DNA of 59,788 nt, filler included, from Basidiobolus meristosporus CBS 931.73 (taxonomy: Eukaryota; Fungi; Basidiobolomycota): NCBI GenBank assembly GCA_002104905.1. It is 4 parts of 4 records of this genome, joined end to end, with 100 filler letters (N's around TTAATTAATTAA, not from the genome) between each part and the next. Parts side by side here need not be neighbours in the genome. Positions count along the whole stretch, not along the records: positions 31,064 to 51,268 come from MCFE01001009.1; 3 more parts are not named here. The stretch is one strand, 5' to 3'. Both the position numbers and the translations under genes were made by a program. Below, piece after piece: positions 11,733 through 46,957 of this stretch (its first letter is position 1; each line of letters opens with the position of its first letter). Under the pieces are notes generated by a model. The model was not told where the DNA came from. It made no database searches and saw only the letters and a list, made by a program, of their open reading frames with translations.

Positions 11733-12620
11733 TTACAGTCTGGGTTCATCAATATGGACTGAATAGGCATAGGCTAAGTTTGTACCCTCATTGATATAGT
11801 AATTTGGGCTGTTTCTTGTCCGATTGGATCTCCGGGCATTTGATACTGGAATGATCACTTCTGGGATATTCCTGGGCACTGATTCTGGCTGAACCATGAT
11901 TGTAGAGTCCTCTGAAGTGAAAAAATTTTCATTGTCTTGCTCTGATTCAATCCTGACAATTGGTGGACTTGAGATCAAATTTTTGTCATCATCTGATGTC
12001 ATTTTTTGTGAAAATTTTGAATTTTCATCAAACAACACATCCCTGGACTTGATCAGCTTCTTTGCTTTGGTATTGCAGAGTCTGTATGCCTTACTCTCAT
12101 TGCAGTAGCCCAAAAATATGCATTTTACACTTTTTGGCTCAAATTTTGACTGATTTCCAGCCAGTTTTTTGGCATATGCTGTACACCCAAATATTCTTAG
12201 ATGTTCTGCACTTGGTCTGTATCCATACCATGCTTCAAATGGAGTAGAATCACAAAGTATTCTGTTATAACTCCTATTTTTAAGATATACAGCAGTGGCA
12301 ACTGATTCCGCCCAAGAATCATAGGATAATTTTTGATCATGGATCATAGATCTTGCCATATCAATTATTGATCTGTTAGCTCGCTCTGCTACTCCATTTT
12401 GCTGTGGGGAGTATGGTACAGTAGTCTCTTGCTTTATCCCATGAATTTTGCAGAAGTGGATGAAGAGTTTGGAGGTATATTCTCCACCATTGTCAGAGCG
12501 TATTTTCTTGATTTTTCACAGGTTTCTCTCTCCACCATGGCTTTAAACTCCCTGAACTTAGACAGAGCTTCTTCCTTTCTCTCCATGAAGTAGACCCATG
12601 TGTATCTTGTATAATCATCA
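11733..12620 (-). pseudogene. Copia integrase core and C-terminus, frameshifted
   Basis: DDYTRYTWVY, RSDNGGEY, PQQNGVAERANR, WAESVATAVYLKNR, KFEPKSVKCIFLGY. A5 at 12512-12516 where the copy near 49350 has A6. Confidence 0.9.
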
Positions 12621-12720
12621 NNNNNNNNNNNNNNNNNNNNNNNNNNNNNNNNNNNNNNNNNNNNTTAATTAATTAANNNNNNNNNNNNNNNNNNNNNNNN
12701 NNNNNNNNNNNNNNNNNNNN
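12621..12720. other. Assembly gap (100 bp) with TTAATTAATTAA linker
   Basis: N run with the all-frame-stop linker at 12665-12676. Confidence 0.98.
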
Positions 12721-31063: not shown

Positions 31064-31243
31064 TTCTAGTGAAAATACACAACCATCGAGCCTCTCATCG
31101 CATGAAACATTGGGCCCGGTCCATTGGTTTGTAAAAGGTTTCGGGAAATTTCCAAAATTTTCCATTCGAGATCTTGGTAGTTATACTACCATACGATAGC
31201 ATAACATTTGTGTGGTTTGTTATGTACTTGGTATCAAAACTCT

Positions 31244-31480
31244 CTAATAATCATCGTAGTCATCCCCACCACTGCCCCCTCCATACTTCCTTCTTCCGTG
31301 GCTGTGGTCGCCATAATCATAATCACCACCACCATGACCTACTCCCTTGTAGTCGGGATCGTAAGAACGCTCAAGGACTGTAGCATTGATGACCACCGCT
31401 GCGGAGACGACAAGGAATAGCTTTACAGCGGAGAATCTCCTGTGGAAATAATGATACAAAGCAGTGGACAGTCGGGTCAT
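31244..31480 (-). CDS. DY/G-rich secreted repeat protein copy 1 (diverged; family ATG replaced by AGG at 31441; possible pseudogene)
   Basis: RRFSAVKLFLVVSAAVVINATVLERSYDPDYKGVGHGGGDY...YDDY aligns to the family N-terminus MKYSIAKLLLVISAALA. Confidence 0.65.
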   Translation of the reverse strand: MTRLSTALYHYFHRRFSAVKLFLVVSAAVVINATVLERSYDPDYKGVGHGGGDYDYGDHSHGRRKYGGGSGGDDYDDY

Positions 31481-31788
31481 TTTATAGTGCGACTGAAGTA
31501 TGTAATACAGTAGTATACTTCATCTGTATTACGAGTTTGAAATCGAGTCATAAGTTCTGGTGCCCTCGCTCTGCAATGTCTATAGTAGGTTCACGCTTTG
31601 TTTCCTTGTAGTGCTCCTGTTATACCAACTTAGTAGGACCTAAACTTTCTGTTGTGACTAAACACTGGCACACTAGTTGGCCTGATCTTGTTGCTGGTAG
31701 AGATTTCCAACATTTAAGAAAATATATGGAGATATTCACTCGAATGTCGTTTATTGTGTACTTGGTATCAAGAGGGTATCCAAAATCT

Positions 31789-32172
31789 CTAATAGTCGTC
31801 ATAACCATCACCACGACCACGACCACCACCACCATGCTTCCTCCTTCCATCGTAGTCATCATCGTAGTCGTTGCCGTCGTATCTCTTTCTCCCGTGGCCG
31901 CGGCCATCGTAGTCATCATCGTAGTCGTCACCATCATGTCTCCTTCCTCGGCCACGGCCATTGCCATCGTAATCATCATCGTAGTCGCCACCTCCGCCAC
32001 CACCATATCTCCTTCTTCCGTGACCATGGCTGTCGTAGTCATCGTCGTAGTCACCGCCACCACCGTGACCTACTCCCTTGTAGCCAGGATCGTAAGAGCG
32101 CTCAAGGACTGTGGCGTTGATAGCCAACGCAGCGGAGATGACAAGGAGAAGCTTTGCAACAGAGTATTTCAT
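31789..32172 (-). CDS. DY/G-rich secreted repeat protein copy 2, 127 aa
   Basis: MKYSVAKLLLVISAALA signal; DYDDDYD / GHGRRR repeats; TATA upstream, AATAAA downstream. Confidence 0.9.
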   Translation of the reverse strand: MKYSVAKLLLVISAALAINATVLERSYDPGYKGVGHGGGGDYDDDYDSHGHGRRRYGGGGGGDYDDDYDGNGRGRGRRHDGDDYDDDYDGRGHGRKRYDGNDYDDDYDGRRKHGGGGRGRGDGYDDY

Positions 32173-32619
32173 CTTGAGATAGTGAGTTGGAGGAGTGGAC
32201 GGCTGGTGGTATTTATAAGAAGAAACCATGCGTGAGTATTAGCACGCTCTATAGGTTTATCAGTGTTGTGGGTTTGTATACGCACATTCAAATGCAGAGT
32301 GCATACACTGCAAGCTAGCCATGGCTTACGACAGGATCTACCTTCACTCTGCAGCGTCAGTTTGTAGATCTTCAGGTGTAGGTGTGTCCCGTGCGCCGCG
32401 TAGTACTTGCAGCATCAATATGTGCCAGCTACGAATCAATCACTATTTTGGTCAGATCTTGTTGTTTGCCCATTTCAGCAATAAGAAGGCAAGCAGTGGT
32501 TTCAGAAATTTAAGCTCACATGGCTGCTTAATGCCTGTAAGTATTTACAACTCTGGATGTGTAATGGCGTAGCATAGTTTATTGTGTATCTGGTATCAAA
32601 AAGAATGTATCTCAAGTCT

Positions 32620-32988
32620 CTAGTAGTCGTCATAGCCATCACCACGGCCACCACCACCACCATGCCTCTTTCTCCCATCGTAGTCATCATCGTAATCATT
32701 GCCATGCTTCTTTCTTCTTCCGTGACCGTGACCATCGTAGTCATCGTCGTAGTCATCGCCATCATATCTCCTTCCTCTTCCACGGCCATTGCCATCATAG
32801 TCGTCATCGTAGTCATCGTCATACTTCTTTCTTCTTCCATGGCCATTACCATCGTAATCATCGTCGTAGTCACCGCCACCATGACCTACCCCCTTGTAGT
32901 CAGGGTCGTAGGAGCGCTCAAGGACTGTAGCGTTGATAGCCAACGCAGCGGAGACGACAAGGAGAAGCTTTGCAATGGAGTATTTCAT
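32620..32988 (-). CDS. DY/G-rich secreted repeat protein copy 3, 122 aa
   Basis: Same family signal peptide and repeats. Confidence 0.9.
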   Translation of the reverse strand: MKYSIAKLLLVVSAALAINATVLERSYDPDYKGVGHGGGDYDDDYDGNGHGRRKKYDDDYDDDYDGNGRGRGRRYDGDDYDDDYDGHGHGRRKKHGNDYDDDYDGRKRHGGGGGRGDGYDDY

Positions 32989-33443
32989 GCTGAGATAGTG
33001 ATTTGAAGGAGGGACCGATCGGATTTATATACAGGGTGGTGAGAGTAAACACAAGCAGTAGCACGCTTCACTGGTGTTGTGGATTTGTATTGCACAATAA
33101 ATCTTTGGGATCGAATCATGACATGTGGTAGTCACCTCCCACAGTCTGCAGTGTTAAGGCATCGAATATTATGATCCTCTATTTAATTCAGGCACCACGT
33201 GTTACTTATAGTCACAGCGGGATGCTCTAAATGACTACAACTGATTAATATTAGCTAAGTACACCATTGGCAAATTACCAGAATTTCCTGAACTTCGTAT
33301 AGTCTATTGTGGTTCTTATGCCAGCATGAAGCTAATATCATTCAAGGAATCTTGCAACTTTGTTAATTGGGGACAATCGCTGTTTATTAGATATTTGGTA
33401 TCAAGAGGGCATCTAGAGGGTATCAAGAGGGTATCTAGAATCT

Positions 33444-33803
33444 CTAGTAGTCATCATAGCCATCACCACGGCCACCACTACCACCACCATACTTCTTTCT
33501 TCCATCATATTCATCATCGTAATCGTTGCCATGCTTCTTTCTTCTTCCGTGACCGTGGCCATCGTAGTCATCACCATCGTATCTCCTTCCTCTTCCACGG
33601 CCATTGCCATCATAGTCGTCATCGTAGTCATCGTCATACTTCTTTCTTCTTCCATGGCCATTGCCGTCGTAATCATCGTCATAGTCACCGCCACCATGAC
33701 CTACCCCCTTGTATTCAGGGTCGTAGGAGCGCTCAAGGACTGTAGCATTGATAGCCAATGCAGCGGAGATGACAAGGAGAAGCTTTGCAATGGAGTATTT
33801 CAT
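33444..33803 (-). CDS. DY/G-rich secreted repeat protein copy 4, 119 aa
   Basis: Same family; DPEY variant. Confidence 0.9.
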   Translation of the reverse strand: MKYSIAKLLLVISAALAINATVLERSYDPEYKGVGHGGGDYDDDYDGNGHGRRKKYDDDYDDDYDGNGRGRGRRYDGDDYDGHGHGRRKKHGNDYDDEYDGRKKYGGGSGGRGDGYDDY

Positions 33804-34267
33804 GCTGAGATAGTGATTTGAAGGAGGGGCTGATCAGATTTATATACAGGGTGGTGAGAGTAAGCATAAGCAGTAGCACAAGCAGTAGCATGCTTCATCA
33901 GTGTTGTGGGATTTGTGTTGAGCCTTGCAATCGCTTCAAGCTGCAATGTCAAGACATCAGATATGGGGATTGCCATTTGCTCTATGCACCACCTGTTACT
34001 TACAGCGTCAGTATGGCGTCAACTTCGGCGAGATATCAGCTTATTGCAGTATGTTCTAACAGGTTACAATTTGATCTGTTTCCTTTGTCAGATAAGCACA
34101 CCATTAGCAAACTACCAAAAATTTCCTGAACATCGTATTTCAGTATTCAATACTGAAGTTGTCATAATTTTACATCAAATATCAATTGTAGGTAATCGCA
34201 CAACTTTGAAAATCAGGTGCGATGGCTGTTTATTAGGTTTTTGGTATCAAGATGGTATCTCAAGTCC

Positions 34268-34558
34268 CTAATAATCGGCATAACCACCACCGCGGCCATG
34301 CTGCCTTCTTCCGTCATAGTCAACATCGTAATCATTGCCATGCTTCTTTCTTCTTCCGTGACCGTGACCGTGGCCATCGTAGTCATCGTCATACTTCTTT
34401 CTTCTTCCATGACCATTGCCGTCGTAGTCATCGTCATAGTCACCACCACCATGACCCATCCCCTTGTAGTCAGGATCGTAAGAGCGCTCAAGGACTGTAG
34501 CACTGATAGTCAGCGCCGTGGAGATGACAAGGAGAAGCTTTGCGATGGAATATTTCAT
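34268..34558 (-). CDS. DY/G-rich secreted repeat protein copy 5, 96 aa
   Basis: MKYSIAKLLLVISTALT; ends GGGYADY. Confidence 0.85.
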   Translation of the reverse strand: MKYSIAKLLLVISTALTISATVLERSYDPDYKGMGHGGGDYDDDYDGNGHGRRKKYDDDYDGHGHGHGRRKKHGNDYDVDYDGRRQHGRGGGYADY

Positions 34559-34939
34559 GTTGGAAGCGTGGCAGGAAACCATATCTTTTTGTAGGGTTAT
34601 GGGAGTATATACATGCAGTAGTGCGCTGTACAGTTTCATCAGTACTGTAGCCTGGTATCGAGACATGATACCGATGTCTTTACTCCGCAATTTAACTCAC
34701 AACTTTGTTTACTTGAGATGCTCCTGTTATATCAACTCTTCTGTTGCGGGTCCTAACCAATCACGGGCATACTAGTTGGCCTGATCTTGTTGCTGGTAGA
34801 GATTTCCAACATATAAGCCCTGGCGAGGTATTTTATGTAAATGAGGCATTTTATGCAATTTGGGGCCAGAAAATATATGGAAATATTCACTCGAATGTCG
34901 TTTATTGTGTACTTGGTATCAAGAGGGTATCCAAAATCT

Positions 34940-35320
34940 CTAATAGTCGTCATAACCATCACCACGACCACGACCACCACCACCATGCTTCCTCCTTCCA
35001 TCGTAGTCATCATCGTAGTCGTTACCGTCATATCTCTTTCTTCCGTGGCCGCGGCCATCGTAGTCATCGTCGTAGTCGTCACCATCATGTCTCCTTCCAC
35101 GGCCACGGCCATTGCCATCGTAATCATCATCGTAGTCGCCACCTCCACCACCGCCATATCTCCTTCCGTGACCATGGCCGTCGTAGTCATCGTCGTAGTC
35201 ACCGCCACCACCGTGACCTACTCCCTTGTAGCCAGGATCGTAAGAGCGCTCAAGGACTGTGGCGTTGATAGCCAACGCAGCGGAGATGACAAGGAGAAGC
35301 TTTGCAACAGAGTATTTCAT
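34940..35320 (-). CDS. DY/G-rich secreted repeat protein copy 6, 126 aa
   Basis: Near-duplicate of copy 2. Confidence 0.9.
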   Translation of the reverse strand: MKYSVAKLLLVISAALAINATVLERSYDPGYKGVGHGGGGDYDDDYDGHGHGRRYGGGGGGDYDDDYDGNGRGRGRRHDGDDYDDDYDGRGHGRKRYDGNDYDDDYDGRRKHGGGGRGRGDGYDDY

Positions 35321-35767
35321 TTTGAGATGGTGAGTTGGAGGAGTGGACGGCTGGTGGTATTTATAAGAAGAAATCATGCGTGAGTATTAGCACGCTCTAT
35401 AGGTTTATCAGTGTTGTGGGTTTGTATACGCACATTCAAATGCAGAGTGCATACACTGCAAGCTAGCCATGGCTTACGACAGGATCTACCTTCACTCTGC
35501 AGCGTCAGTTTGTAGATCTTCAGGTGTAGGTGTGTCCCGTGCGCCGCGTAGTACTTGCAGTATCAATATGTGCCAGCTACGAATCAATCACTATTTTGGT
35601 CAGATCTTGTTGTTTGCCCATTTCAGCAATAAGAAGGCAAGCAGTGGTTTCAGAAATTTAAGCTCACATGGCTGCTTAATGCCTGTAAGTATTTACAACT
35701 CTGGATGTGTAATGGCGTAGCATAGTTTATTGTGTATCTGGTATCAAAAAGAATGTATCTCAAGTCT

Positions 35768-36136
35768 CTAGTAGTCATCATAGCCATCACCACGGCCACC
35801 ACCACCACCATGCCTCTTTCTCCCATCGTAGTCATCATCGTAATCATTGCCATGCTTCTTTCTTCTTCCGTGACCGTGGCCATCGTAGTCATCGTCGTAG
35901 TCATCGCCATCATATCTCCTTCCTCTTCCACGGCCATTGCCATCATAGTCGTCATCGTAGTCATCGTCATACTTCTTTCTTCTTCCATGACCATTACCAT
36001 CGTAGTCATCGTCATAGTCACCGCTACCATGACCTACCCCCTTGTATTCAGGGTCGTAGGAGCGCTCAAGGACTGTAGCATTGATAGCCAATGCAGCGGA
36101 GATGACAAGGAGAAGCTTTGCAATGGAGTATTTCAT
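35768..36136 (-). CDS. DY/G-rich secreted repeat protein copy 7, 122 aa (copy 3/4 chimera)
   Basis: 3' part and downstream spacer as copy 3; 5' part (DPEY) and promoter as copy 4. Confidence 0.9.
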   Translation of the reverse strand: MKYSIAKLLLVISAALAINATVLERSYDPEYKGVGHGSGDYDDDYDGNGHGRRKKYDDDYDDDYDGNGRGRGRRYDGDDYDDDYDGHGHGRRKKHGNDYDDDYDGRKRHGGGGGRGDGYDDY

Positions 36137-36573
36137 GCTGAGATAGTGATTTGAAGGAGGGGCTGATCAGATTTATATACAGGGTGGTGAGAGTAAGCAC
36201 AAGCAGTAGCATGCTTCATCAGTGTTGTGGATTTGTGTTGAGCCTTGCAATCGCTTCAAGCTGCAGTGTTAAGGCATGGGGATTGTCGGTTTGATACATG
36301 TGCCACGTGTTAATTTTGGCCACAGTGGGGTGTCAACTTGTCACAATATGCTCTACCAGGCCACAATTTGGTCTGTTTTCTTTGCTAGATAACCGCACTA
36401 ACAGCAAATTACCAGATATTTCCTGAACTTCGTGTTTCAGCATTCGGTACTTGACCTCTTGTGGGTTCTTATGTTGGCATGAAGCTGATGTTATCAGAGG
36501 AATCTTACAACCTTGTAAATGGGGAAAATTACACTTTATTAGTTATTTGATATCAAAAGGGTATCTGGAATCA

Positions 36574-36777
36574 TTAATAGTCGTCATAGTCGCCACCCCC
36601 ACCTCCGCCATATCTCCTTGTTCCGTGATCATGGGCGTCGTATTCATCGTCGTAATCACCACCGCCGCCATGGCCTACTCCCTTGTAGTCAGGATCGTAG
36701 GAGCACTCAAGAACTGTAGTATTGATAGCCAACGCTGCGGAGATGACAAGAAGGAGCTTTGCTACAGAGTATTTCAT
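36574..36777 (-). CDS. DY/G-rich secreted repeat protein copy 8, short 67 aa
   Basis: Family signal peptide; only one to two repeats; LERS changed to LECS. Confidence 0.8.
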   Translation of the reverse strand: MKYSVAKLLLVISAALAINTTVLECSYDPDYKGVGHGGGGDYDDEYDAHDHGTRRYGGGGGGDYDDY

Positions 36778-37088
36778 CTGGAGATAGTAAGTTAGAGTGA
36801 CAAACCTAGTGCATATATAGGGTGATGAGAGTGAGTATATGTGATATCATGCTCTACAGTTTATGTAAGATCTAACAGGCTACAATATGGCTCTAATCAT
36901 TTGTTAATCAAGCACACCATTAGCAAATTACCAAAATTCCTGAACTTTGGTATTCAAAATATAACCTGTGGTGGTTTCTTATGCTGATAGTATTGGTGTG
37001 TAATTTTATCACTTAGTAAACTGGGGATAATCAGTGCTTGTTGTGTATTTGGTGTCAGGAGGATATCATGAAGGTATCAAGAGAGTAT

Positions 37089-37421
37089 CTAGAATTTCTG
37101 GTAGTCGTCATAACCATCACCACGGCCGCTACCACCATACTTCTTTCTTCCATCGTAGTCGTTGCCATGCTTCTTTCTTCCGTGACCGTGACCATCGTAG
37201 TCATCGCCATCGTATCGCCTTCTTCCACGGCCATTGCCATCGTAGTCATCACCATACTTCTTTCTTCTTCCATGGCCATTGCTGTCATAATCATTGTCGT
37301 AGTCACCACCACCATGACCCATCCCCTTGTAGTCAGGATCGTAAGAGCGCTCAAGGACAATAGCATTGATAGTCAGTGCCGTGGAGATGACAAGGAGAAG
37401 CTTTGCGATGGAATATTTCAT
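37089..37421 (-). CDS. DY/G-rich secreted repeat protein copy 9, 110 aa
   Basis: Shares promoter with copy 5; stop lost, giving a YDDYQKF end. Confidence 0.85.
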   Translation of the reverse strand: MKYSIAKLLLVISTALTINAIVLERSYDPDYKGMGHGGGDYDNDYDSNGHGRRKKYGDDYDGNGRGRRRYDGDDYDGHGHGRKKHGNDYDGRKKYGGSGRGDGYDDYQKF

Positions 37422-37802
37422 GTTGGAAGCGTGGCAGGAAACCATATCTTTTTGTAGGGTGATGGGAGTATATACATGCAGTAGTGCGCTGTACAGTTTC
37501 ATCAGTACTGTAGCTTGGTATCGAGACATGATACCGATGTCTTTACTCCGCAATTTAACTCACAACTTTGTTTACTTGAGATGCTCCTGTTATATCAACT
37601 CTTCTGTTGCGAGTCCTAACCAATCACGGGCATACTAGTTGGCCTGATCTTGTTGCTGGTAGAGATTTCCAACATATAAGCCCTGGCGAGGTATTTTATG
37701 TAAATGAGGCATTTTATGCAATTTGGGGCCAGAAAATATATGGAAATATTCACTCGAATGTCGTTTATTGTGTACTTGGTATCAAGAGGGTATCCAAAAT
37801 CT

Positions 37803-38174
37803 CTAATAGTCGTCATAGCCATCACCACGACCACGACCACCACCACCATGCTTCCTCCTTCCATCGTAGTCATCATCGTAGTCATCGCCGTCGTATCTCT
37901 TTCTTCCGTGGCCGCGGCCATCGTAGTCATCATCGTAGTCGTCACCATCATGTCTCCTTCCTCTTCCACGGCCATTGCCATCGTAGTCGTCATCGTAGTC
38001 ATCGTCATACTTCTTTCTTCTTCCATGGCCATTACCGTCGTAGTCATCGTCGTAGTCACCACCACCATGACCTACCCCCTTGTAGTCAGGATCATAAGAG
38101 CGCTCAAGGACTGTTGCGTTGATAGCCAACGCAGCGGAGATGACAAGGAGAAGCTTTGCAATGGAGTATTTCAT
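37803..38174 (-). CDS. DY/G-rich secreted repeat protein copy 10, 123 aa (copy 2/3-type chimera)
   Basis: 3' end and spacer as copies 2/6; 5' end as copy 3. Confidence 0.9.
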   Translation of the reverse strand: MKYSIAKLLLVISAALAINATVLERSYDPDYKGVGHGGGDYDDDYDGNGHGRRKKYDDDYDDDYDGNGRGRGRRHDGDDYDDDYDGRGHGRKRYDGDDYDDDYDGRRKHGGGGRGRGDGYDDY

Positions 38175-38697
38175 GCTGAGATAGTGATTTGAAGGAGAGA
38201 CCGATCAGGTTTATATATAGGGTGGTGAGAGTAAGCATATGTAGCAGCATGCATATAGCTTTCGACGCGTTCGCCTTGCATTCATACGATAAGACTTGGA
38301 TTAAATGCTAAGCTGGGTAAATCAATATGATGCAGGCTTGTTTGTAGGTTCATCATCTTGTTAGCTTTCCCACAATTCGATATTTTGGGCGCGATGGTTG
38401 CTTATTGAGTGCTTGTGGGCTCTAATGATCGACATATCTATCACACCGACCCTTGATCGTTGAAAAGGCACAGTGTCTGAAGTGTGAAGTAAGTTTGCTT
38501 GTGGATGTCAAGCAATGGATATAATATCAGCCTTCTGGTCTCATAAATCCCGTAACTAAGCACTGTATTAAGCGGGCTATTTTTTCAAGGTTCAAGTAGC
38601 TGCAGCCTATCATATCTATAAATATATACACCCGTCAACGTATTGTAAGTAAACATCGTTTATTGTGTACTTGGTAACAAGAGGGTATCTAGAATTT

Positions 38698-39054
38698 CTA
38701 ATAGTCGTCATAACCATCACCACGGCCACCACCATACTTCTTTCTTCCATGTCCATTGCCATCATAGTCATACTTCTTTCTTCTCCCGTGACCGTGACCA
38801 TCGTAATCATCCTCGTAGTCATCTCCATCGTATCTCCTTCTTCCACGACCATTACCGTCATAATCGTCATCGTAGTCGTTGCCATACTTCTTTCTTCTTC
38901 CATGACCATTGCCGTCATAATCATCGTCATAGTCACCGCCACCACCATGACCTACCCCCTTGTAGTCAGGATCGTAAGAGCGCTCAAGGACTGAAGCATT
39001 GATGGCCAACGCAGCGGAGATGACAAGGAGAAGCTTTGCAATGGAGTATTTCAT
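38698..39054 (-). CDS. DY/G-rich secreted repeat protein copy 11, 118 aa
   Basis: Family signal and repeats. Confidence 0.9.
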   Translation of the reverse strand: MKYSIAKLLLVISAALAINASVLERSYDPDYKGVGHGGGGDYDDDYDGNGHGRRKKYGNDYDDDYDGNGRGRRRYDGDDYEDDYDGHGHGRRKKYDYDGNGHGRKKYGGGRGDGYDDY

Positions 39055-39360
39055 CTTGAGATGGTGATTTGAAGGAGCGAACGACTGGATGCATTTATAG
39101 GATAATGAGAGTAGACGCATGCAGTAGCACACTTTATCAGTGTTGTTGATTTGTATCGGTGGACTGCATAGCGCTAACATTGATGTGTGATCTCATCTTA
39201 TGAGGGAGTTGATTTATGCCAAAACTTGCGTTCAACATGTGCTCGGATTTGATTGATATGTCAACTATGGTTACCACTATTTCCATGTTTAATGGCTCAA
39301 TCACGTAGAATCGATCAAAGGAGATAGTGTTGTGCCCTGAGCTGAACTTTGGAGAGTGAA

Positions 39361-39433
39361 GGGGCGTTGGCCTAATGGATAAGGCATCAGACTTCGGATC
39401 TGGGGATTGTGGGTTCGAGTCCCATGCGCCTCG
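39361..39433 (+). tRNA. tRNA-Arg(UCG) copy 1
   Basis: 73-nt cloverleaf: acceptor GGGGCGT/GCGCCTC, D-arm GCCT/AGGC, anticodon loop CT-TCG-GA, T-arm GTGGG-TTCGAGT-CCCAT; T4 run after. Confidence 0.96.
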
Positions 39434-39670
39434 TTTTAGTATTGCAGCACTTCGATCCAGATTGGGTCAATCGCACTTTTTCTAACACTTCACCATGTTC
39501 GCCATTTCGGTGATTATCGGATGATTTGGATCAACTTCCAACATTTAAGCTGCCATTTTATGCTTTGCTAACGTCGCGTTGATAACCTTATAAATGGATA
39601 CACCTTACAACATACCATGTGTAAATATCAGTTTATTGAGTATCTGGTATCAAAAAGGTATCTCAAGTCT

Positions 39671-40036
39671 CTAGTAGTCTTCATAGCCATCACCACGACC
39701 ACGACCACCATGCCTCTTTCTCCCATCGTAGTCATCATCGTAATCATTGCCATGCTTCTTTCTTCTTCCATGACCGTGGCCATCGTAATCGTCGTCGTAG
39801 TCATCACCATCATATCTCCTTCTTCTTCCACCGCCATTGCCATCGTAGTCGTCGTCATAGTCATCACCATATTTCTTTCCTCTTCCATGGCCATTGCCGT
39901 CATAATCATCATCGTAGTCACCACCGCCATGACCTACCCCCTTGTAGTCAGGGTCGTAGGAACGCTCAAGGACTGTAGCATTGATAGCCAACGCAGCAGA
40001 GATGACAAGGAGAAGCTTTGCAACGGAGTATTTCAT
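39671..40036 (-). CDS. DY/G-rich secreted repeat protein copy 12, 121 aa
   Basis: Family signal and repeats. Confidence 0.9.
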   Translation of the reverse strand: MKYSVAKLLLVISAALAINATVLERSYDPDYKGVGHGGGDYDDDYDGNGHGRGKKYGDDYDDDYDGNGGGRRRRYDGDDYDDDYDGHGHGRRKKHGNDYDDDYDGRKRHGGRGRGDGYEDY

Positions 40037-40364
40037 CTTGAGATAGTGATTTGAAGGAGTGGCTGACCGAATGTATTTATAGGATAATGAGGGTAGACGC
40101 ATGCAATAGCACACATTATCAGTTTTGTCGATTTGTATCGGTGAGCTGCACGGCACTAACATTGATGTGGGATCCCTTCTTATGAAGGAGTTGATTTATG
40201 CCAATACTTGCGTTTAACATGTGTTCGGATTCGAAGGATACGTCGAATAGGGTTACTACTATATCTCCAGATTTTGGTCCAACACGGTATTGGATTTTAA
40301 GTAGGCTCATAGAATTGCTAAAGAAGGGTAGTCTTCTACCCTGAGCTGTACTTTGAAGAGTGAG

Positions 40365-40437
40365 GGGGCGTTGGCCTAATGGATAAGGCATCAGACTTCG
40401 GATCTGGGGATTGTGGGTTCGAGTCCCATGCGCCTCG
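40365..40437 (+). tRNA. tRNA-Arg(UCG) copy 2
   Basis: Identical to copy 1. Confidence 0.96.
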
Positions 40438-41087
40438 TATTTTGTGCTTCATCGTCAGATGTCTCGAACTAGAGCCATAATAGCATTTAGCTCTGCAAAT
40501 ATTTTCACAGTTTAGACATTTAGCAATTGCAACAAAATTATAGACATCACATACTGCTACTCTGTGCTCGTAGCAGGATGAGGCCAGAGGAACCCACCAC
40601 TGGTTTTGGGCAATTTAATTGCAATCTCACCAGTAAATCCATTTTTCCGTTGTCGTTAACATACTTCTTCCTTTCCAGATTGTTCGAAGAGTAATAAAAT
40701 CCTCGAAATGCCCTAGCCCATGCCGATGTGTCCGTACAAAGTAGAACCGGAGGATTTCTATACAGCACATCGGTGTTATGATTCGCATTTGATAGAGTAG
40801 CATAGTGTTTTGATGTCTGCAGTTGTATTATATATGAAACTAGCAGTAATCATCATCAGTGTCCTTGAAATGCTCGTGCTCATGTCCTTTCATTTACTTC
40901 GTATTAGCGTGACTATTAAAAACAAGTGAATTACCTAGTGAACAAGAAAAAATATAGCAGAGCACCTGCATTTGTAGGAAATATAATATATTCTCTGTTT
41001 AGGAAGTAATAATTCTTTGTGAAAGTACTGTTTATTAAGTTGTATAACGAGGTTAAGTCTTTGGTATTCAGAGGGTATCTTAAGTCT

Positions 41088-41468
41088 CTAATAGTCGTCG
41101 TAGTCATCACCATGGCCACGGCCACCACTATACTTCCTTCTTCCATGGCCATTGCCATCGCCATCATAGTCATTATCGTAATCATTGCCATACTTCTTTC
41201 TTTTTCCGTGACCGTGGCCATCGTAGTCATCTCCATCATATCTCCTTCTTCCACGGCCATTACCATCGTAATCATCGTCGTAGTTGCCACCTCCACCGCC
41301 GCCATATCTCCTTCCGTGACCATTGCCGTCATAATCATCGTCATAGTCACCGCCACCACCATGACCTACCCCCTTGTAGTCAGGATCGTAAGAGCGCTCA
41401 AGGACTGAAGCATTGATGGCCAACGCAGCAGAGATGACAAGGAGAAGCTTTGCAATGGAGTATTTCAT
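41088..41468 (-). CDS. DY/G-rich secreted repeat protein copy 13, 126 aa
   Basis: Family signal and repeats; promoter shared with copy 11. Confidence 0.9.
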   Translation of the reverse strand: MKYSIAKLLLVISAALAINASVLERSYDPDYKGVGHGGGGDYDDDYDGNGHGRRYGGGGGGNYDDDYDGNGRGRRRYDGDDYDGHGHGKRKKYGNDYDNDYDGDGNGHGRRKYSGGRGHGDDYDDY

Positions 41469-41774
41469 CTTGGGATGGTGATTTGAAGGCGTGAACGACT
41501 GGATGCATTTATAGGATAATGAGAGTAGACGCATGTAGTAGCACACTTTATCAGTGTTGTTGATTTGTATCGGTGGACTGCATAGCGCTAACAGTGATGT
41601 GTCATCTCATCTTATGAAGGAGTTGATTTATGCCAAAACTTGCGTTCAACATGTGCTCGGATTTGATTGATATGTCAACTATGGTTACCACTATTTCCAT
41701 GTTTAATGGCTCAATCACGTAGAATCGATCAAAGGAGATAGTGTTGTGCCCTGAGCTGAACTTTGGAGAGTGAA

Positions 41775-41847
41775 GGGGCGTTGGCCTAATGGATAAGGCA
41801 TCAGACTTCGGATCTGGGGATTGTGGGTTCGAGTCCCATGCGCCTCG
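41775..41847 (+). tRNA. tRNA-Arg(UCG) copy 3
   Basis: Identical to copy 1, flanks also nearly identical. Confidence 0.96.
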
Positions 41848-42084
41848 TTTTAGTATTGCAGCACTTCGATCCAGATTGGGTCAATCGCACTTTTTCTAAC
41901 ACTTCACCATGTTCGCCATTTCGGTGATTATCGGATGATTTGGATCAACTTCCAACATTTAAGCTGCCATTTTATGCTCTGCTAACGTTGCGTTGATAAC
42001 CTTATAAATGGATACACCTTACAACATACCATGTGTAAATATCAGTTTATTGAGTATCTGGTATCAAAAAGGTATCTCAAGTCT

Positions 42085-42465
42085 CTAATAATCGTCATAA
42101 CCATCACCTCGGCCGCCGCCACCACGACCACCATACTTCTTTCTTCCATTACCATCGTAGTCATCATCGTAATCATTGTCATACTTCTTTCTCTTTCCGT
42201 GACCGTGGCCATCGTAGTCATCGTCGTAGTCATTGCCGTCATATCTCCTTCCTCTTCCGCGACCATTGCCATCGTAGTCGTCGTCATAGTCATCGCCGTA
42301 CTTCTTTCTTCTTCCGTGACCGTGGCCATCATAGTCATCATCATAGTCACCGCCACCATGACCTACCCCCTTGTAGTCAGGATCGTAAGAGCGCTCAAGA
42401 ACTGTAGCATTGATAGCTAGCGCAGCGGAGATGACAAGGAGAAGCTTTGCAATGGAGTATTTCAT
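42085..42465 (-). CDS. DY/G-rich secreted repeat protein copy 14, 126 aa
   Basis: Family signal and repeats. Confidence 0.9.
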   Translation of the reverse strand: MKYSIAKLLLVISAALAINATVLERSYDPDYKGVGHGGGDYDDDYDGHGHGRRKKYGDDYDDDYDGNGRGRGRRYDGNDYDDDYDGHGHGKRKKYDNDYDDDYDGNGRKKYGGRGGGGRGDGYDDY

Positions 42466-42787
42466 GCTGAGATAGTGATTTGAAGGAGGGCCGATCAGAT
42501 TTATATACAGGGTGGTGAGAGTAAGCATAAGCAGTAGCACAAGCAGTAGCATGCTTCATCAGTGTTGGCGATTTGTATTGATGATTTAAGCTGCACAGCA
42601 CTAACATTGATGTATGCTCCCATCTTGTGATAGAATCAACTTGTGTCAACATTTGCGTTCAACATGTGTTCGGATGTGATTGATATGCCAACTATGGCTA
42701 CCGCTGTTTCCATGCTTAATGGCTCAGCCATATAGAATTGATAAAAAGAGAAAGTAGTTTACCCTGAGCTGGAAATTTGAGAGTGAA

Positions 42788-42860
42788 GGGGCGTTGGCCT
42801 AATGGATAAGGCATCAGACTTCGGATCTGGGGATTGTGGGTTCGAGTCCCATGCGCCTCG
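42788..42860 (+). tRNA. tRNA-Arg(UCG) copy 4
   Basis: Identical to copy 1; T5 run after. Confidence 0.96.
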
Positions 42861-43093
42861 TTTTTGTAATTTAACACCATAATCGAAATGGAGTCAGTAA
42901 CACTGTTTGAATTATTCGCCAAGGTCACCATTTCGAAGTAAATCAAATGATTTGGATATTTCAATTTCCAACTTGAAAGTTTTAGCGTTACATTTTGATA
43001 CCCTTGTAGATAGTCACAATTCTGAACATGTCATGTGTAAATGTTGGTTTATTGTGTATTTGGTATTTGGTACCAAGAAGGTATCTCAAGTCT

Positions 43094-43480
43094 CTAATAA
43101 TCGTCATAACCATCACCTCGGCCGCCGCCGCCACCGCCGTACTTCTTTCTTCCATGACCATTACCATCATAATCGTCGTCATAATCATTGTCATACTTCT
43201 TTCTTCTTCCGTGACCATGACCATCGTAGTCATCGTCGTAGTCATCCCCGTCATATCTCCTTCTTCTTCCACGGCCATTACCATCATAATCATCATCGTA
43301 GTCGTTACCATACTTCTTTCTTCCTCCATGGCCATTACCGTCATAATCATCGTCATAGTCACCACCACCACCGTGACCTACCCCCTTGTAGTCAGGATCG
43401 TAAGAGCGCTCAAGGACTGAAGCATTGATAGCCAACGCAGCGGAGATGACAAGGAGAAGCTTTGCAACGGAGTATTTCAT
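43094..43480 (-). CDS. DY/G-rich secreted repeat protein copy 15, 128 aa
   Basis: Family signal and repeats. Confidence 0.9.
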   Translation of the reverse strand: MKYSVAKLLLVISAALAINASVLERSYDPDYKGVGHGGGGDYDDDYDGNGHGGRKKYGNDYDDDYDGNGRGRRRRYDGDDYDDDYDGHGHGRRKKYDNDYDDDYDGNGHGRKKYGGGGGGRGDGYDDY

Positions 43481-44474
43481 GTTGATATAATGGTTGGAAA
43501 TAATCAGAAGATCAAGGCATTTATACATATTACAATGCAAGAATATGCAGAAGCACGCCCATCAGTGTTTGCTGATCACACGTACAGTGTTGAGGAGAGA
43601 TGTCCGTAGCATTCATGGCTTTAATCTAGTGCGCATTTAGCAGTTTTATAATGCGATATGTGTTGTTGGTTAAGCACACTCAGTACCAAACTACCTGTGC
43701 TGACAACTCAGCTTGTAAGCTGTACATCAATTAGATGCTTCCCAACTTGTGCTATACTTGCAGTCATGGCTCTTTCTGCAGGTGACTTGAGTTTGATATG
43801 TCCAGATGCATATTATGTTTTGAAATCAGATTTTCTTGAGTGCCAATGACACGCCTGTGGTAATGCTGTACCTAGGTTTTCTGGCCAACGAGAAGCAGTA
43901 GTCAATCATATAGTATTGTGGCATATTTCTAAATGGAATTCTGAGTCAGTTTACTTCAGGCCATTACACTGTGCAATATTCCTAGTAATGGCCAGACATT
44001 TCTTTGTAGCATATTAACCAGCAATAGTAGTAGCAGTAGTAGTCAAAATCATCGTTGGTGAAGCGTTTCAGCAGATTGAAATAATAGGAAGCAAAGTATA
44101 ACGTGCTTTATGTTTGCTTGCATAGACTCACGGTGAAATGCCACTCTCAATTTGCGAGATAAATATATTCAAGCACCTGAATACGGGGTAACCCAAGGAG
44201 GAGGATTTTAGTGGCGAAATTTGTCAGGTATTTAGTTCGGATATATTCGGATATATTGTATTAGGTAACCACTCCAAATAGATAATCCACAATTTCCTTT
44301 TATGACCCACTGTTCTTCGCGGAGGTTACTAATGGGGGAATGTTTTATTGATATGACAAACGTTCTCTAGTTGGAATGACAAGAAATATTTTATATGTTC
44401 TAGATGTATGGCAAGCATTTCTATTTAACTAGGCCTGTTAGCATTTTCTATCACTGGAAACGAATCTAAGCAAA

Positions 44475-46406
44475 ATGAGACATGTAATTATTGGAGGTGT
44501 AGCCGGAGGAGCAACAGCAGCCGCCCGATTGAGAAGAGTGGATGAGACGGCTGAGATCATTTTATTGGAGAAGGGTCCCTATATCTCTTACGCCAACTGT
44601 GGTTTGCCGTACTATATCGGCGGAGTCATTGCCAAACGCGAAAAACTGCTGCTGCAGACGCCAAAGTCGTTTGGTACGCGTTTCCGTATTGACGTCAGAA
44701 TAGAGAGCGAAGTAATTGCCATCCATCCAGAGGATAAAAGCCTGACCATTCGTAGGGCAAATGGAGAAGAATACAAAGAAACTTACGACAAGCTGCTACT
44801 ATCACCAGGTGCCAATCCCGTGAAGCCGCCATTGGAGGGTATCAATTCCGAAGGCATCTTCACCCTGCGCAACGTAGAAGATACCGACCATATCAAAGCG
44901 TACATTGCTGAGAAACAGGTAAAGCGTGCCGTAGTAGTAGGTGCCGGTTTTATCGGGCTGGAGATGGCGGAGAACCTGCACCATGCCGGGGTGGCTGTTT
45001 CCGTAGTCGAAATGGGCAACCAGGTTATGGCTCCTATCGACTTCTCTATGGCAGCGTATATCCATCAACACTTGACACAAAAGGGCACATCTTTATATCT
45101 TGAAGAAGGTGTTACCCACTTCCAGCGTACAGACAGCGGCATTACTGTTTTCCTGAAAAGTGGCAGGACCATTCCTGCCGATATGGTATTACTCTCTATC
45201 GGCGTGCGTCCAGCAACAGCATTGGCGCAACAGGCCGGCTTGAAGTTGGGAGAGACGGGTGGCATCTGGGTAGATAAACACTTGGAAACCTCCCAAAAGG
45301 ATATCTATGCAGTGGGTGATGCTATTGAATATCCTCATCCGTTGACCGGGAAACCGTGGCTCAACTATCTTGCCAATCCGGCTAATCGCCAAGGTCGTAT
45401 CGTAGCCGATAACATGGTATTTGGCAACACGGTTTCTTATGAAGGGGCTATCGGTACTTCTATCGCCAAAGTATTCGATATGACTGTGGCTTCTACAGGA
45501 CTGGCAGCCAAGCGTTTGAAGCAGTTGGGAATGGAGTATCAGAGTTCAGTTACCCACTCCTCTTCCCATGCAGGCTATTATCCGGACGCTTTGCCCTTGA
45601 CGCTGAAGCTAACCTTTCACCCTAAGACTGGTAAGCTTTACGGTGCGCAATGTGTGGGCTACGAAGGAGTGGACAAGCGTATCGACCAAATAGCTGGAGT
45701 CATCAAACATGGCGGGACGGTATATGACCTGACGGAAACTGAGCACACCTATGCACCCCCTTTCTCATCTGCCAAAGATCCTATAGCCATTGGTGGATAT
45801 GTTGCCTCCAATATAATCAGCGGGGCTATGCCGGCTATTTCCTGGCGCGAACTCGTTGATGAGAAAGACCAAGTGATGATGTTTGATACCCGTACTGCCG
45901 AAGAATACTCATTTGGCTCCATTCCGGGGGCTGTCAATGTTCCCTTGAATGAATTGCGTGAGCACATTGCTGAAATCCCGATGGATAGACCAGTTGTTCT
46001 ATTCTGTGCCATAGGACTGCGCGGCTATCTAGCTCAGCGCATCTTGATGGGACGCGGTTATCGCAATGTTCGCAACCTAATCGGCGGCTATAAAACTTAT
46101 TCCACCAGCGTAGCTCCTATTGCAAAGCCTTCTACCGAGGTTCCTTCACCACAAGAGGCTGGTGAGGCGACAAAGATAAACGTATGCGGGTTACAGTGTC
46201 CCGGGCCTATCATGCAGGTAACAGAAGCGATGAACAGCATTGCGGTTGGCAAACGTGTTACAGTCACGGCAACTGATGCAGGTTTGGCTCGTGACGCCTC
46301 TGCCTGGTGCGACACTACAGGCAACAAATTGATATCAAAGCATGAAGAAAAAGGTCGCTACACAGTTGTTCTAGAAAAAGGAGAACCCGCCACTAAACAG
46401 AATTGA
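44475..46406 (+). CDS. cdr: Bacterial-type CoA-disulfide/persulfide reductase - rhodanese - TusA/SirA fusion, 643 aa
   Basis: GGVAGG FAD motif, SYANCGLPY redox Cys, GAGFIGLE NAD motif, YAVGDA, YAPPFS, rhodanese CAIGLRG, TusA CGLQCPGP; intronless. Confidence 0.95.
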   Translation: MRHVIIGGVAGGATAAARLRRVDETAEIILLEKGPYISYANCGLPYYIGGVIAKREKLLLQTPKSFGTRFRIDVRIESEVIAIHPEDKSLTIRRANGEEYKETYDKLLLSPGANPVKPPLEGINSEGIFTLRNVEDTDHIKAYIAEKQVKRAVVVGAGFIGLEMAENLHHAGVAVSVVEMGNQVMAPIDFSMAAYIHQHLTQKGTSLYLEEGVTHFQRTDSGITVFLKSGRTIPADMVLLSIGVRPATALAQQAGLKLGETGGIWVDKHLETSQKDIYAVGDAIEYPHPLTGKPWLNYLANPANRQGRIVADNMVFGNTVSYEGAIGTSIAKVFDMTVASTGLAAKRLKQLGMEYQSSVTHSSSHAGYYPDALPLTLKLTFHPKTGKLYGAQCVGYEGVDKRIDQIAGVIKHGGTVYDLTETEHTYAPPFSSAKDPIAIGGYVASNIISGAMPAISWRELVDEKDQVMMFDTRTAEEYSFGSIPGAVNVPLNELREHIAEIPMDRPVVLFCAIGLRGYLAQRILMGRGYRNVRNLIGGYKTYSTSVAPIAKPSTEVPSPQEAGEATKINVCGLQCPGPIMQVTEAMNSIAVGKRVTVTATDAGLARDASAWCDTTGNKLISKHEEKGRYTVVLEKGEPATKQN

Positions 46407-46957
46407 AGCATTTTGCGTGGCTACAAAAATGCTCCACCTTCCTATAACGTTAGTTTAGTTAGTTTCCCAATTTGGGATTATATAAAGTCATTTGCAATCA
46501 TGCCATTCCATTCCATAAATGTATGAGGCTCTTGTGCTCACTAAATCCAGATCAATTATGCTCCCGATATTCTCAAAATAGTACATAATTGACCAATTCG
46601 TCCCTTGCTTCAAGATCTTGATATGGATTGAAAATGAATATGAATGCTAGCCAAAGAAGGCAATTGAAGGCAATACTTCAACTAATGTAATCCCTAATTG
46701 TTACAAATACTTTACTCGTACACAAATAGAACAGCTAATAGTACTAATTGGTTGGATATTTGTCAGCCATTAGAAAATATCATACGATAAACTGGCTCTT
46801 TTTGTTATGAAAGTCTTGCAGATTGTAAGGCACGTGAAGTAAATGTAGGTTTTTTGATTTTCACATCATGAATATTGCATGTAAAGGGAGTTTTTAAACT
46901 TTAGTAAGCTCTGGCAAGACAACATGTAAAAATATTTATGAAGATCCCACAAATACA

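Follow-up and report, generated by a model that had tools for sequence, protein, structure and literature searches.

A tandem array of secreted block-repeat protein genes in Basidiobolus meristosporus, possible precursors of Kex2-processed peptides

Secreted precursors with repeated cores between basic cleavage sites are already catalogued in fungi as the Kex2-processed repeat proteins (KEPs), and the array described here shares with them a signal peptide and three or more nearly identical cores, each 8 aa or longer and bounded by KR/RR/KK/RK sites (Le Marquer et al., 2019, PMC6339444; Umemura, 2020, PMC7329392). Unlike in KEPs, its linkers are runs of two to four basic residues and not a single dipeptide, and the resulting block pattern is balanced in charge. 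Among 1461 fungal strains, the one studied here was the richest in KEPs, with 43, and the Basidiobolus-only type S-3 (#158) comprised 7 Y-rich members with multiple D, none of which (0/7) had DUF3328 within 15 genes (Umemura, 2020, PMC7329392). Judging by the description of the type, S-3 is very probably the family of the array: the strain is the same, the repeat holds Tyr and several Asp, and no DUF3328 gene is nearby, whereas 7 members were counted against at least 43 copies in the assembly.

The MF-alpha1/2 precursors of Saccharomyces cerevisiae share this general build: a glycosylated leader follows the signal peptide, and Kex2 and Kex1 free the tandem cores at dibasic sites. They differ in having a long pro-region, where the array leader is of about 8-25 residues with one sequon, and in being encoded by 2 genes as opposed to 15 or more; the array cores are polyanionic and of low complexity, they lack STE13 dipeptides, and the proteins do not match the Pfam MF_alpha and MF_alpha_N models. 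Rep1 of Ustilago maydis is likewise a secreted pre-pro-protein that yields many peptides (11) when it is cut in the secretory pathway, and these act as surface material in bulk, not as signals. It is, however, a single gene without sequence similarity to the array family, and its repellents are amphipathic and form amyloid fibrils, whereas the array peptides would be highly charged and hydrophilic.

A further analogue is found in the M96 family of Phytophthora, with more than 40 tandem genes for secreted His/Gly/Ser/Tyr-rich putative oospore-wall proteins that are induced more than 100-fold in mating and vary in copy number between relatives. Both are tandem, lineage-specific families with tens of genes whose secreted products are His/Gly/Tyr-rich and of low complexity, spore-wall material being the proposed role of M96. 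The M96 proteins are Ser-rich, of about 271 aa and without the acidic/basic block build, they belong to an oomycete and not a fungus, and they are not homologous to the array, since profile searches matched nothing outside B. meristosporus. Sandcastle-worm cement, mussel foot proteins and squid-beak His-rich proteins are Gly/Tyr/His/Lys-rich, disordered and secreted, and they condense with oppositely charged partners. The likeness to these animal materials is one of composition only; the array proteins hold both charges in one short chain, and any DOPA, phosphoserine or condensation in them is putative.

Layout of the array and its range

The array lies on a 20,205-bp contig of B. meristosporus CBS 931.73, within the window (the whole stretch of 59,788 nucleotides that was analysed, by whose positions all array coordinates are given). 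Fifteen minus-strand ORFs in one orientation span 31244-43480, and four tRNA genes lie between them:

31244-31480, minus strand: gene 1, divergent terminal copy (family part 31244-31441, upstream ATG at 31480), one acidic block
31789-32172, minus strand: gene 2, 127 aa; TATA box 32211-32217, AATAAA 31750-31755
32620-32988, minus strand: gene 3, 122 aa; ORF whose counterpart on L001 (10001-10189) is frameshifted
33444-33803, minus strand: gene 4, 119 aa; identical to public protein P0003
34268-34558, minus strand: gene 5, 96 aa; variant signal peptide, sequon lost (ISATV), degenerate TATA box (TACAAAA)
34940-35320, minus strand: gene 6, 126 aa; recent duplicate of gene 2 (6% third-codon-position difference)
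35768-36136, minus strand: gene 7, 122 aa; recent duplicate of gene 3
36574-36777, minus strand: gene 8, 67 aa; short, one acidic block, the only Cys of the array
37089-37421, minus strand: gene 9, 110 aa; variant signal peptide, sequon lost (INAIV), QKF end
37803-38174, minus strand: gene 10, 123 aa; ORF
38698-39054, minus strand: gene 11, 118 aa; ORF
39361-39433, plus strand: tRNA-Arg(TCG) in array spacer (Rfam tRNA, 57 bits)
39671-40036, minus strand: gene 12, 121 aa; ORF
40365-40437, plus strand: tRNA-Arg(TCG) in array spacer (Rfam tRNA)
41088-41468, minus strand: gene 13, 126 aa; ORF
41775-41847, plus strand: tRNA-Arg(TCG) in array spacer (Rfam tRNA)
42085-42465, minus strand: gene 14, 126 aa; ORF
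42788-42860, plus strand: tRNA-Arg(TCG) in array spacer (Rfam tRNA)
43094-43480, minus strand: gene 15, 128 aa; TATA box 43519-43525, AATAAA 43048-43053

The sequence-only reading had described 15 co-oriented, intronless genes, and this description holds, each copy being a single ORF from ATG to stop that needs no introns. It had also called the signal peptide near-invariant and the proteins Cys-free. The former is true of the 14 of 15 ORFs that start with MKYS(I/V)AKLL, among which genes 5 and 9 are variant, and not of gene 1, whose degenerate N-terminus lacks the MKYS start and reads ..FSAVKLFLVV..; the latter applies to the other copies, with one Cys in gene 8 (LECSYDP). The counterpart of gene 1 on scaffold MCFE01000056 likewise has no MKYS start, the counterpart on L001 (11540-11737) differs from gene 1 by one residue, and the public model P0007 assigns a spliced MK start to it. 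Public gene models of the family fuse neighbours or set the start upstream of the signal peptide. Long ORFs on the plus strand and in other frames over the array are by-products of a coding frame rich in GAT/GAC/TAT/GGT.

New here are the four interleaved tRNA-Arg(TCG) genes, an arrangement also found in the arrays on L001, L002 and L003, and the adjoining Bacteroidales-like oxidoreductase gene, which was recently acquired.

Three further scaffolds of the assembly hold 13, 10 and 5 more copies, for at least 43 in all, and the reads of a second, diverged isolate contain multi-copy homologues of the signal-peptide/stub region, with a neighbouring gene that is 86% identical in DNA. With the gene 15 protein as the query, no relatives were found in 5.8 billion proteins, 1.84 billion representatives, JGI metagenomes, Pfam, NCBIfam or PDB, and exhaustive profile searches gave no match outside B. 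meristosporus. The family appears lineage-restricted, and the earlier statement that it belongs to no named family is confirmed for Pfam, NCBIfam and PDB. A weak lead comes from language-model neighbours, which include the multi-peptide precursors apidaecin and MF-alpha.

Selection on the copies and architecture of their products

The copies can be aligned end to end with 53 invariant columns, and the pattern of the array is far beyond chance. Nucleotide diversity at codon positions 1, 2 and 3 is 0.080, 0.055 and 0.268, so that third positions are some 4-5 times more variable than first and second, and dN/dS (NG86) is about 0.1. Between most copies and their nearest paralogue, third positions differ by 15-20% and amino acids by only 2.5-12%. 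Every copy has a TATA-like box 35-45 nt upstream of its ATG, which in 12 of 14 copies takes the form TATA(A/T)A(A/T) at -40 to -45. AATAAA follows the stop at 33-55 nt in 13 of 14; apart from these signals the spacers cannot be aligned. Each copy would then be an independent transcription unit with its own predicted TATA-box promoter and poly(A) signal. That the array is instead inert repeated DNA, or a set of decaying, unexpressed pseudogenes, might be read from the frameshifted copy on L001 and the degenerate terminal copy, and is hardly credible given that 14 of 15 frames are intact despite 15-40% silent-site divergence among copies, that variation is concentrated at third positions, that core promoter and poly(A) signals are kept amid unalignable spacers, and that the diverged isolate retains the family.

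The signal peptide is of 17 residues and ends in an A-L-A cleavage motif, followed by a short leader with one N-x-T/S sequon (INATVLER...); in the 14 MKYS copies this stub reads IN(A/T)(T/S)VLERSYDP.YKG.GHGGG. Beyond it come one to four acidic D/Y blocks, each closing with G(N/H)G(H/R)G and two to four K/R, and a YDDY-type tail. The core has the form Y-(D/G)-x-D-Y-D-D-D-Y-D-G-(N/H)-G-(H/R)-G, typically three or four per product. The junctions obey a rule: among 149 basic runs in 40 proteins, Gly stands before 147 and Tyr or His after 145. Residues in basic columns remain basic in 92%, and the Tyr and His columns rank among the most conserved. In four copies on other scaffolds one dibasic site is gone (RSRY, GSRY), with no further decay.

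Charged residues make up a fraction of 0.40-0.48, and the charge blockiness kappa is 0.41-0.49 compared to 0.16 ± 0.045 in shuffles (z = 4-7). The Atlas model has a mean pLDDT of 0.52 and a pTM of 0.27, and the products are predicted to be small, secreted, disordered proteins.

Released peptides or intact proteins

Three or more repeats of 8 aa or longer between dibasic sites and four or more fragments at KR/RR, the two published KEP criteria, were found in 13 of the 14 complete copies. Together with the signal peptide and its A-L-A motif, this supports the KEP part of the earlier interpretation, and we consider it an even call that the array encodes Kex2-processed-repeat-type precursors of anionic Tyr/Asp peptides. 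Canonical (K/R)R is present in 118 of the 149 basic runs (79%). Against cleavage, P1 lacks Arg in the other 21% (RKK, KK), 82% of the runs extend beyond the pair of residues that a kexin requires and are conserved, and 198 of 674 basic residues sit outside the runs, chiefly in RG repeats within the predicted peptides, a pattern that would also fit an intact charge-patterned protein. The four copies on other scaffolds that have lost a dibasic site count against cleavage too. As to the protease itself, an S8 protease survey lists no S8B kexin among 60 B. meristosporus sequences, nor any for Conidiobolus coronatus; the latter is not among the lineages that a published KEP survey names as lacking KEX2, and kexins are reported from related genera.

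The main alternative is that the proteins stay uncut and are secreted as blocky polyampholytes, whose acidic Tyr and basic Arg/Lys/His blocks would attract one another, by charge and by Arg-Tyr contacts, both inside a chain and from chain to chain, with the protein then condensing into wall, matrix or adhesive material. Examples of such sites would be the wall of zygospores or conidia and the sticky tip of capilliconidia, which belong to the biology of the genus Basidiobolus; hardening might come from Tyr cross-links or Ca2+/metal, and gene dosage would supply the bulk. This structural or adhesive option, also raised by the sequence-only reading, draws on the charge blockiness and charged fraction, the conservation of three- to four-residue basic runs and RG repeats past what a cut site needs, the conserved Tyr/His columns and the documented tandem-array analogue in oomycete M96, with M96-3 the third language-model neighbour (0.70) as a lead only. 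We nevertheless rate it as possible and rather unlikely: on general knowledge and the KEP definitions, one would expect a kexin-containing Golgi to cut any fully disordered secretory protein that exposes 4-5 (K/R)R sites on its way through, the sequences have no wall anchor (no GPI-type hydrophobic C-terminus, Cys or Pir-type repeat), and about 100 mature residues make a short matrix protein.

Two other fates of released peptides fare less well. Specific pheromone- or hormone-type signals read by a receptor, as with yeast alpha-factor, are suggested by the precursor architecture and by the MF-alpha precursors among the weak language-model neighbours. They are improbable here, as the STE13 X-A/X-P spacer is missing after the cut sites (P1' is Y or H, then D or G), the four cores of one protein differ systematically while dozens of variants coexist, 15 to over 40 gene copies exceed the dosage known signals need, and the peptides are low-complexity polyanions. 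The extension to RiPPs, here Tyr-cross-linked cyclic products of the ustiloxin/dikaritin kind, is very improbable and unsupported: the Tyr-rich repeats and the KEP architecture are common ground with ustiloxin precursors, but the Y-x-I-x core is missing, S-3 members lack DUF3328 neighbours as noted above, and no DUF3328/UstYa, tyrosinase, methyltransferase or other tailoring gene occurs within the window or next to any of the other three arrays.

For the preferred reading, as Kex2-processed precursors, a kexin-type protease would cut the basic runs in the late secretory pathway, until which point the basic linkers would act as internal counter-ions neutralising the acidic cores, and a Kex1-type carboxypeptidase would then remove the basic residues. 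Fifteen genes with about four cores each would yield abundant, strongly anionic Tyr/Asp peptides of 11-21 residues with Gly/His or Gly/Arg tails. Because four core positions differ, many variants coexist and gene dosage is very high, such peptides would work in bulk and not as a single receptor-specific signal. Candidate roles are the binding of Ca2+ or other metals, through the D-x-D-x-D-G-like string and GHG tail of each core, a Tyr-based modification or cross-linking of the wall or matrix, and, B. meristosporus being a gut-associated fungus, an anionic antimicrobial action in the gut.

Layout of the array and of its proteins

The array, to which public proteins match, lies on a 20,205-bp contig of Basidiobolus meristosporus CBS 931.73 (31064-51268), and an ORF listing together with a motif scan recovers the 15 co-oriented genes claimed for it by the sequence-only reading, all on the minus strand between 31244 and 43480 and spaced 641-1432 bp start-to-start. 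Fourteen of the 15 begin with MKYS(I/V)AKLL; the remaining one, at the end of the contig (31244-31441), is degenerate at its N-terminus. The near-invariant signal peptide that had been proposed was also confirmed: as judged by eye, MKYSIAK serves as the basic n-region in 14 of the 15 copies, a hydrophobic core of 10 residues follows, and A-L-A fills positions -3 to -1. The description of the proteins as Cys-free is only nearly right since it holds for nearly all copies and fails for the short copy at 36574-36777, which has a Cys.

Through alignment of 40 copies from four scaffolds, we read the layout as a 17-residue signal peptide ending in A-L-A, a fixed stub with one N-x-T/S sequon (absent from two variant copies), up to four acidic D/Y cores set between basic runs, and a Gly-rich C-terminal tail with a YDDY end. 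Each core has its own positional signature, the second always ending in GNGRGR.. and the third in G(H/R)GHG (GHGHG or GRGHG). The composition is dominated by G (21.7%), D (20.8%) and Y (12.4%), followed by R (9.4%), K (6.4%) and H (4.7%), and the mature proteins have a pI of 4.1-6.6 and a net charge of -1 to -13. Intrinsic disorder would agree with the low-confidence Atlas model of one copy (pLDDT 0.52, pTM 0.27).

It is also important to consider the quality of the public gene models of the family, which are often wrong (P0001, P0002, P0004, P0005 and P0006). Among these five, two fuse neighbouring genes by an invented intron, one splices round a frameshift, and two begin at upstream ATGs before the TATA box and so bury the signal peptide. 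Secretome and Kex2-processed repeat protein (KEP) surveys built on such models will therefore undercount the family.

Age, transcription units and distribution of the family

Among the 14 complete copies in the window, diversity at codon positions 1, 2 and 3 is 0.080, 0.055 and 0.268, respectively. Where two copies share a residue, the D, Y, G and H codons show synonymous differences in 28-34% of cases, and amino-acid differences in the same columns reach only 7-12%. The NG86 dN/dS of about 0.1 is qualitative only, because dS is inflated for two-fold codons, and for this reason we rely on the codon-position diversity and on the synonymous differences among identical residues. Most copies stand 15-20% from their nearest paralogue at third positions and only two groups of recent duplicates are present, which argues that the array is old and has been kept by purifying selection rather than by recent amplification or strong homogenisation. 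These selection signals contradict a pseudogene reading. Long ORFs on the plus strand and in other frames were considered as coding and ruled out, since the variation falls at the third positions of the minus-strand frame.

The spacers are unalignable (pairwise difference about 0.55) except over the roughly 100 bp that precede and the roughly 60 bp that follow each ORF. A TATA(A/T)A(A/T) box stands at -40 to -45 from the MKYS ATG in 12 of 14 copies, and AATAAA follows the stop by 33-55 nt in 13 of 14; every copy looks like a transcription unit of its own. The upstream in-frame ATGs chosen in some public models lie 5' of the TATA box, whose position places them outside the likely mRNA.

Features of the window outside the family genes
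39361-39433, plus strand: tRNA-Arg(TCG) gene in an array spacer
40365-40437, plus strand: tRNA-Arg(TCG) gene in an array spacer
41775-41847, plus strand: tRNA-Arg(TCG) gene in an array spacer
42788-42860, plus strand: tRNA-Arg(TCG) gene in an array spacer
44475-46406, plus strand: Pyr_redox_2 + Rhodanese + TusA gene, CoA-disulfide-reductase-like, intronless, 643 aa, adjoining the array

The four tRNA-Arg(TCG) genes are identical, and they occupy the spacers of the longer units (997-1432 bp start-to-start) on the strand opposite to the family genes. The same interleaving is found in the three other arrays of the assembly, the diverged one on L002 included, so that the ancestral repeat unit was a gene plus a tRNA, the two having been co-amplified. 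A role in supplying tRNA to these Arg-rich genes was ruled out, as the family almost never uses CGA and CGG, the codons read by anticodon UCG, which are the rarest of its Arg codons (AGA 79, CGT 27, AGG 27, CGC 17, CGA 4, CGG 0). That the tRNA genes serve as insulators is speculation.

Other arrays of the family in the same assembly
MCFE01000056 (L001): 13 copies, flanked by a CAP-domain gene and ribosomal protein genes
MCFE01001205 (L003): 10 copies, flanked by the same oxidoreductase gene as in the window
MCFE01000314 (L002): 5 copies, a diverged array

The assembly thus holds at least 43 copies, versus the 7 counted in a published survey for type S-3, by its description very probably the same family. 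L001 1-11917 and L003 1-13208 are collinear with 31064-46451 of the window at 95-98.6% identity with differing copy numbers (15 in the window versus 13 in the complete relative array of L001), and these two scaffolds stem from a very recent segmental duplication or, if the genome is not haploid, represent haplotypes. The copy at L001 10001-10189 is frameshifted; its window counterpart at 32620-32988 is intact. L002 is 80-90% identical to the window, and its single genes are closest to particular window genes, not to their own neighbours.

In a second isolate bearing the same species label (read runs X4 and X5), contigs cover the signal-peptide/stub region of several copies at about 85-92% identity. 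Summed over this region, the depth is several times as high as on the neighbouring oxidoreductase gene, depth not being equal to copy number, and the oxidoreductase gene itself has 86% DNA identity. Taken together, the coverage of several copies, the excess depth and the divergence of the neighbour indicate that the family is present and multi-copy in a clearly diverged isolate.

A word-indexed search of 5.8 billion proteins with the whole protein gave 6 clusters, all from B. meristosporus, and the same kind of search with the N-terminal 42 residues gave only 8 candidates, none from outside the species. When 1.84 billion representatives were searched exhaustively with an HMMER profile, the 4 hits were again all from B. 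meristosporus, and a scan of JGI metagenomes gave no family match. The sequence-only reading had recognised no named family, and this agrees with the curated collections, where neither Pfam (E<=0.1) nor NCBIfam nor PDB sequences (E<=10) gave a hit. Neighbours in the ESM Atlas all score below 0.8 and are for this reason leads only.

Processed peptides or intact proteins

The KEP architecture that had been proposed, a signal peptide plus repeats split by dibasic sites, is borne out under both published operational definitions in 13 of the 14 complete window copies. By the rule of Umemura 2020 (three or more tandem repeats of 8 aa or longer, set between KR, KK, RK or RR and none above 100 aa) these copies give 4-5 fragments, and the 67-aa copy gives only 2; by that of Le Marquer 2019 (at least 4 fragments on in-silico cutting at KR or RR) 13 of 14 copies give 4-6. 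The N-terminal ER signal peptide expected of a KEP is present as well. Judged from its sequences, the family is a KEP by operational definition. Among the 1461 fungal strains surveyed in Umemura 2020 (PMC7329392), B. meristosporus CBS 931.73 has the most KEPs (43), and the paper describes type S-3 as found in Basidiobolus only, with 7 members of high Y and multiple D content and no DUF3328 neighbour. By that description, as distinct from accession, S-3 is very probably the array family, which seems to have been counted as a KEP in a kingdom-wide survey yet never described or studied.

There are 149 basic runs of at least 2 residues, of which 147 are preceded by Gly and 145 are followed by Tyr or His, so that the junction rule G-(K/R)n-(Y/H) is strict; (K/R)R occurs in 118 of them. 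Since the established alpha-factor pathway works in this way, a secretory protein that is disordered and exposes four or five (K/R)R sites would be expected to be cut by a Golgi kexin and its fragments then trimmed by a Kex1-type carboxypeptidase. The predicted products are polyanionic Tyr/Asp peptides of 11-21 residues with G-H-G, G-R-G or G at the C-terminus. As the four cores are not alike and occur in many coexisting variants, we favour a role in which the peptides would act in bulk and physicochemically rather than as a receptor-specific signal; metal or Ca2+ binding, wall or matrix chemistry via Tyr, and anionic antimicrobial action are candidate roles by inference only. Compared with calcium-binding loops of the DxDxDG or EF-hand kind, the cores all contain the string D-D-D-Y-D-G but have G, H or R at the positions downstream of it, and no EF-hand or TSP3 model matches. 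A survey of S8 proteases reports no S8B (kexin-type) member among the 60 S8 proteins of the strain; kexins are reported from genera related to Basidiobolus, and KEX2 is near-universal in fungi. That survey appears to have missed kexins generally.

The main rival to processed peptides is an intact, self-associating wall, matrix or adhesive protein; the sequences are strong and blocky polyampholytes, as such a protein would be expected to be. The charged fraction is 0.40-0.48 and kappa is 0.41-0.49 versus 0.16 in shuffles, 82% of the basic runs exceed the length required of a cut site, 29% of the basic residues lie outside the runs (largely in RG repeats), and residues in basic columns remain basic in 92% of cases. 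A well-documented analogue is Phytophthora M96, where more than 40 genes in tandem encode secreted proteins that are rich in His/Gly/Ser/Tyr and putatively belong to the oospore wall. M96 resembles the array family in organisation and composition without homology, as the profile search of 1.84 billion representatives returned B. meristosporus proteins only. Against an intact protein stand the lack of any anchoring feature and its expected vulnerability to kexin. In one form of this rival, which we consider improbable, the intact proteins would be single-chain complex coacervates in which acidic Tyr blocks and basic Arg/Lys/His blocks of one short secreted chain condense to form the capilliconidial adhesive droplet or material of the spore wall, possibly hardened by Tyr cross-links, with pH, Ca2+ or partial kexin cutting as the trigger. 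If true, this would be a convergent fungal counterpart of marine coacervate glues and of the oomycete M96 wall proteins, fed by 15 to more than 40 gene copies.

Two further kinds of processed peptide were weighed. The suggestion that the genes encode RiPP precursors, such as those of the dikaritin/ustiloxin type, is not supported because no tailoring genes lie near any of the four arrays: neither a DUF3328 (UstYa) gene nor a tyrosinase is found near the precursor genes, which are surrounded by an oxidoreductase gene, a retroelement remnant, genes for a CAP-domain protein, ribosomal proteins and an esterase-like protein, and unknowns, and the survey gives DUF3328 for 0 of the 7 S-3 members (Umemura 2020). 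An alpha-factor-like pheromone has little support since the STE13 signature (X-A or X-P after the cut site) is absent, the Tyr or His found after 145 of 149 runs being followed by D or G; Pfam gave no hit to MF_alpha domains.

Neighbouring genes and significance

The oxidoreductase encoded beside the array has 83-85% identity with Bacteroides proteins, rising to 91% with a protein encoded on a Bacteroidales-like metagenome scaffold. Its bacterial relatives are longer (about 815 aa) and carry extra C-terminal DsrE-type domains, which the shorter fungal version lacks. Other fungal scaffolds likewise have the gene next to the array, and a second version that is about 82% identical occurs among the source strain's reads. 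As the gene sits on fungal scaffolds beside the array, it looks like a very recent transfer from a gut bacterium to the fungus. Farther along the contig, broken minus-strand ORFs in an AT-rich stretch at 47410-49425 (GC 0.33-0.38) with an integrase-core (rve) match and reverse-transcriptase-like text look like a decayed copia-type LTR retroelement. On the 195-kb scaffold L001, the far end of the array is flanked by a gene for a CAP/PR-1-type cysteine-rich secretory protein (12194-12673, minus strand), past which lie two genes without a Pfam match and then ribosomal protein genes.

To our knowledge, KEPs are widespread in fungi, a function is known for almost none of them, and early-diverging fungi have been studied least. 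New in this work are the anatomy and true copy number of the array, the evidence that purifying selection has acted over a long time, the strictness of the junction rule, the patterning of charge, the occurrence of the family in a second isolate, and the interleaved tRNA genes. The position of the locus beside what looks like a recently acquired gut-Bacteroidales gene, together with its tRNA interleaving, makes it useful for the study of array growth. No other secreted-peptide locus is as amplified in this strain, which a kingdom-wide survey placed first by number of KEPs. The cores of the family are unusually simple and have a distinctive chemistry (Tyr in acidic surroundings, D-x-D-x-D-G-like strings, Gly/His tails), so that the question of processed peptide versus intact polyampholyte is directly decidable. 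Whichever holds, the KEPs of zygomycete-grade fungi would gain a first functional handle, and a new protein material, or a new peptide with metal-binding or antimicrobial action, may result.
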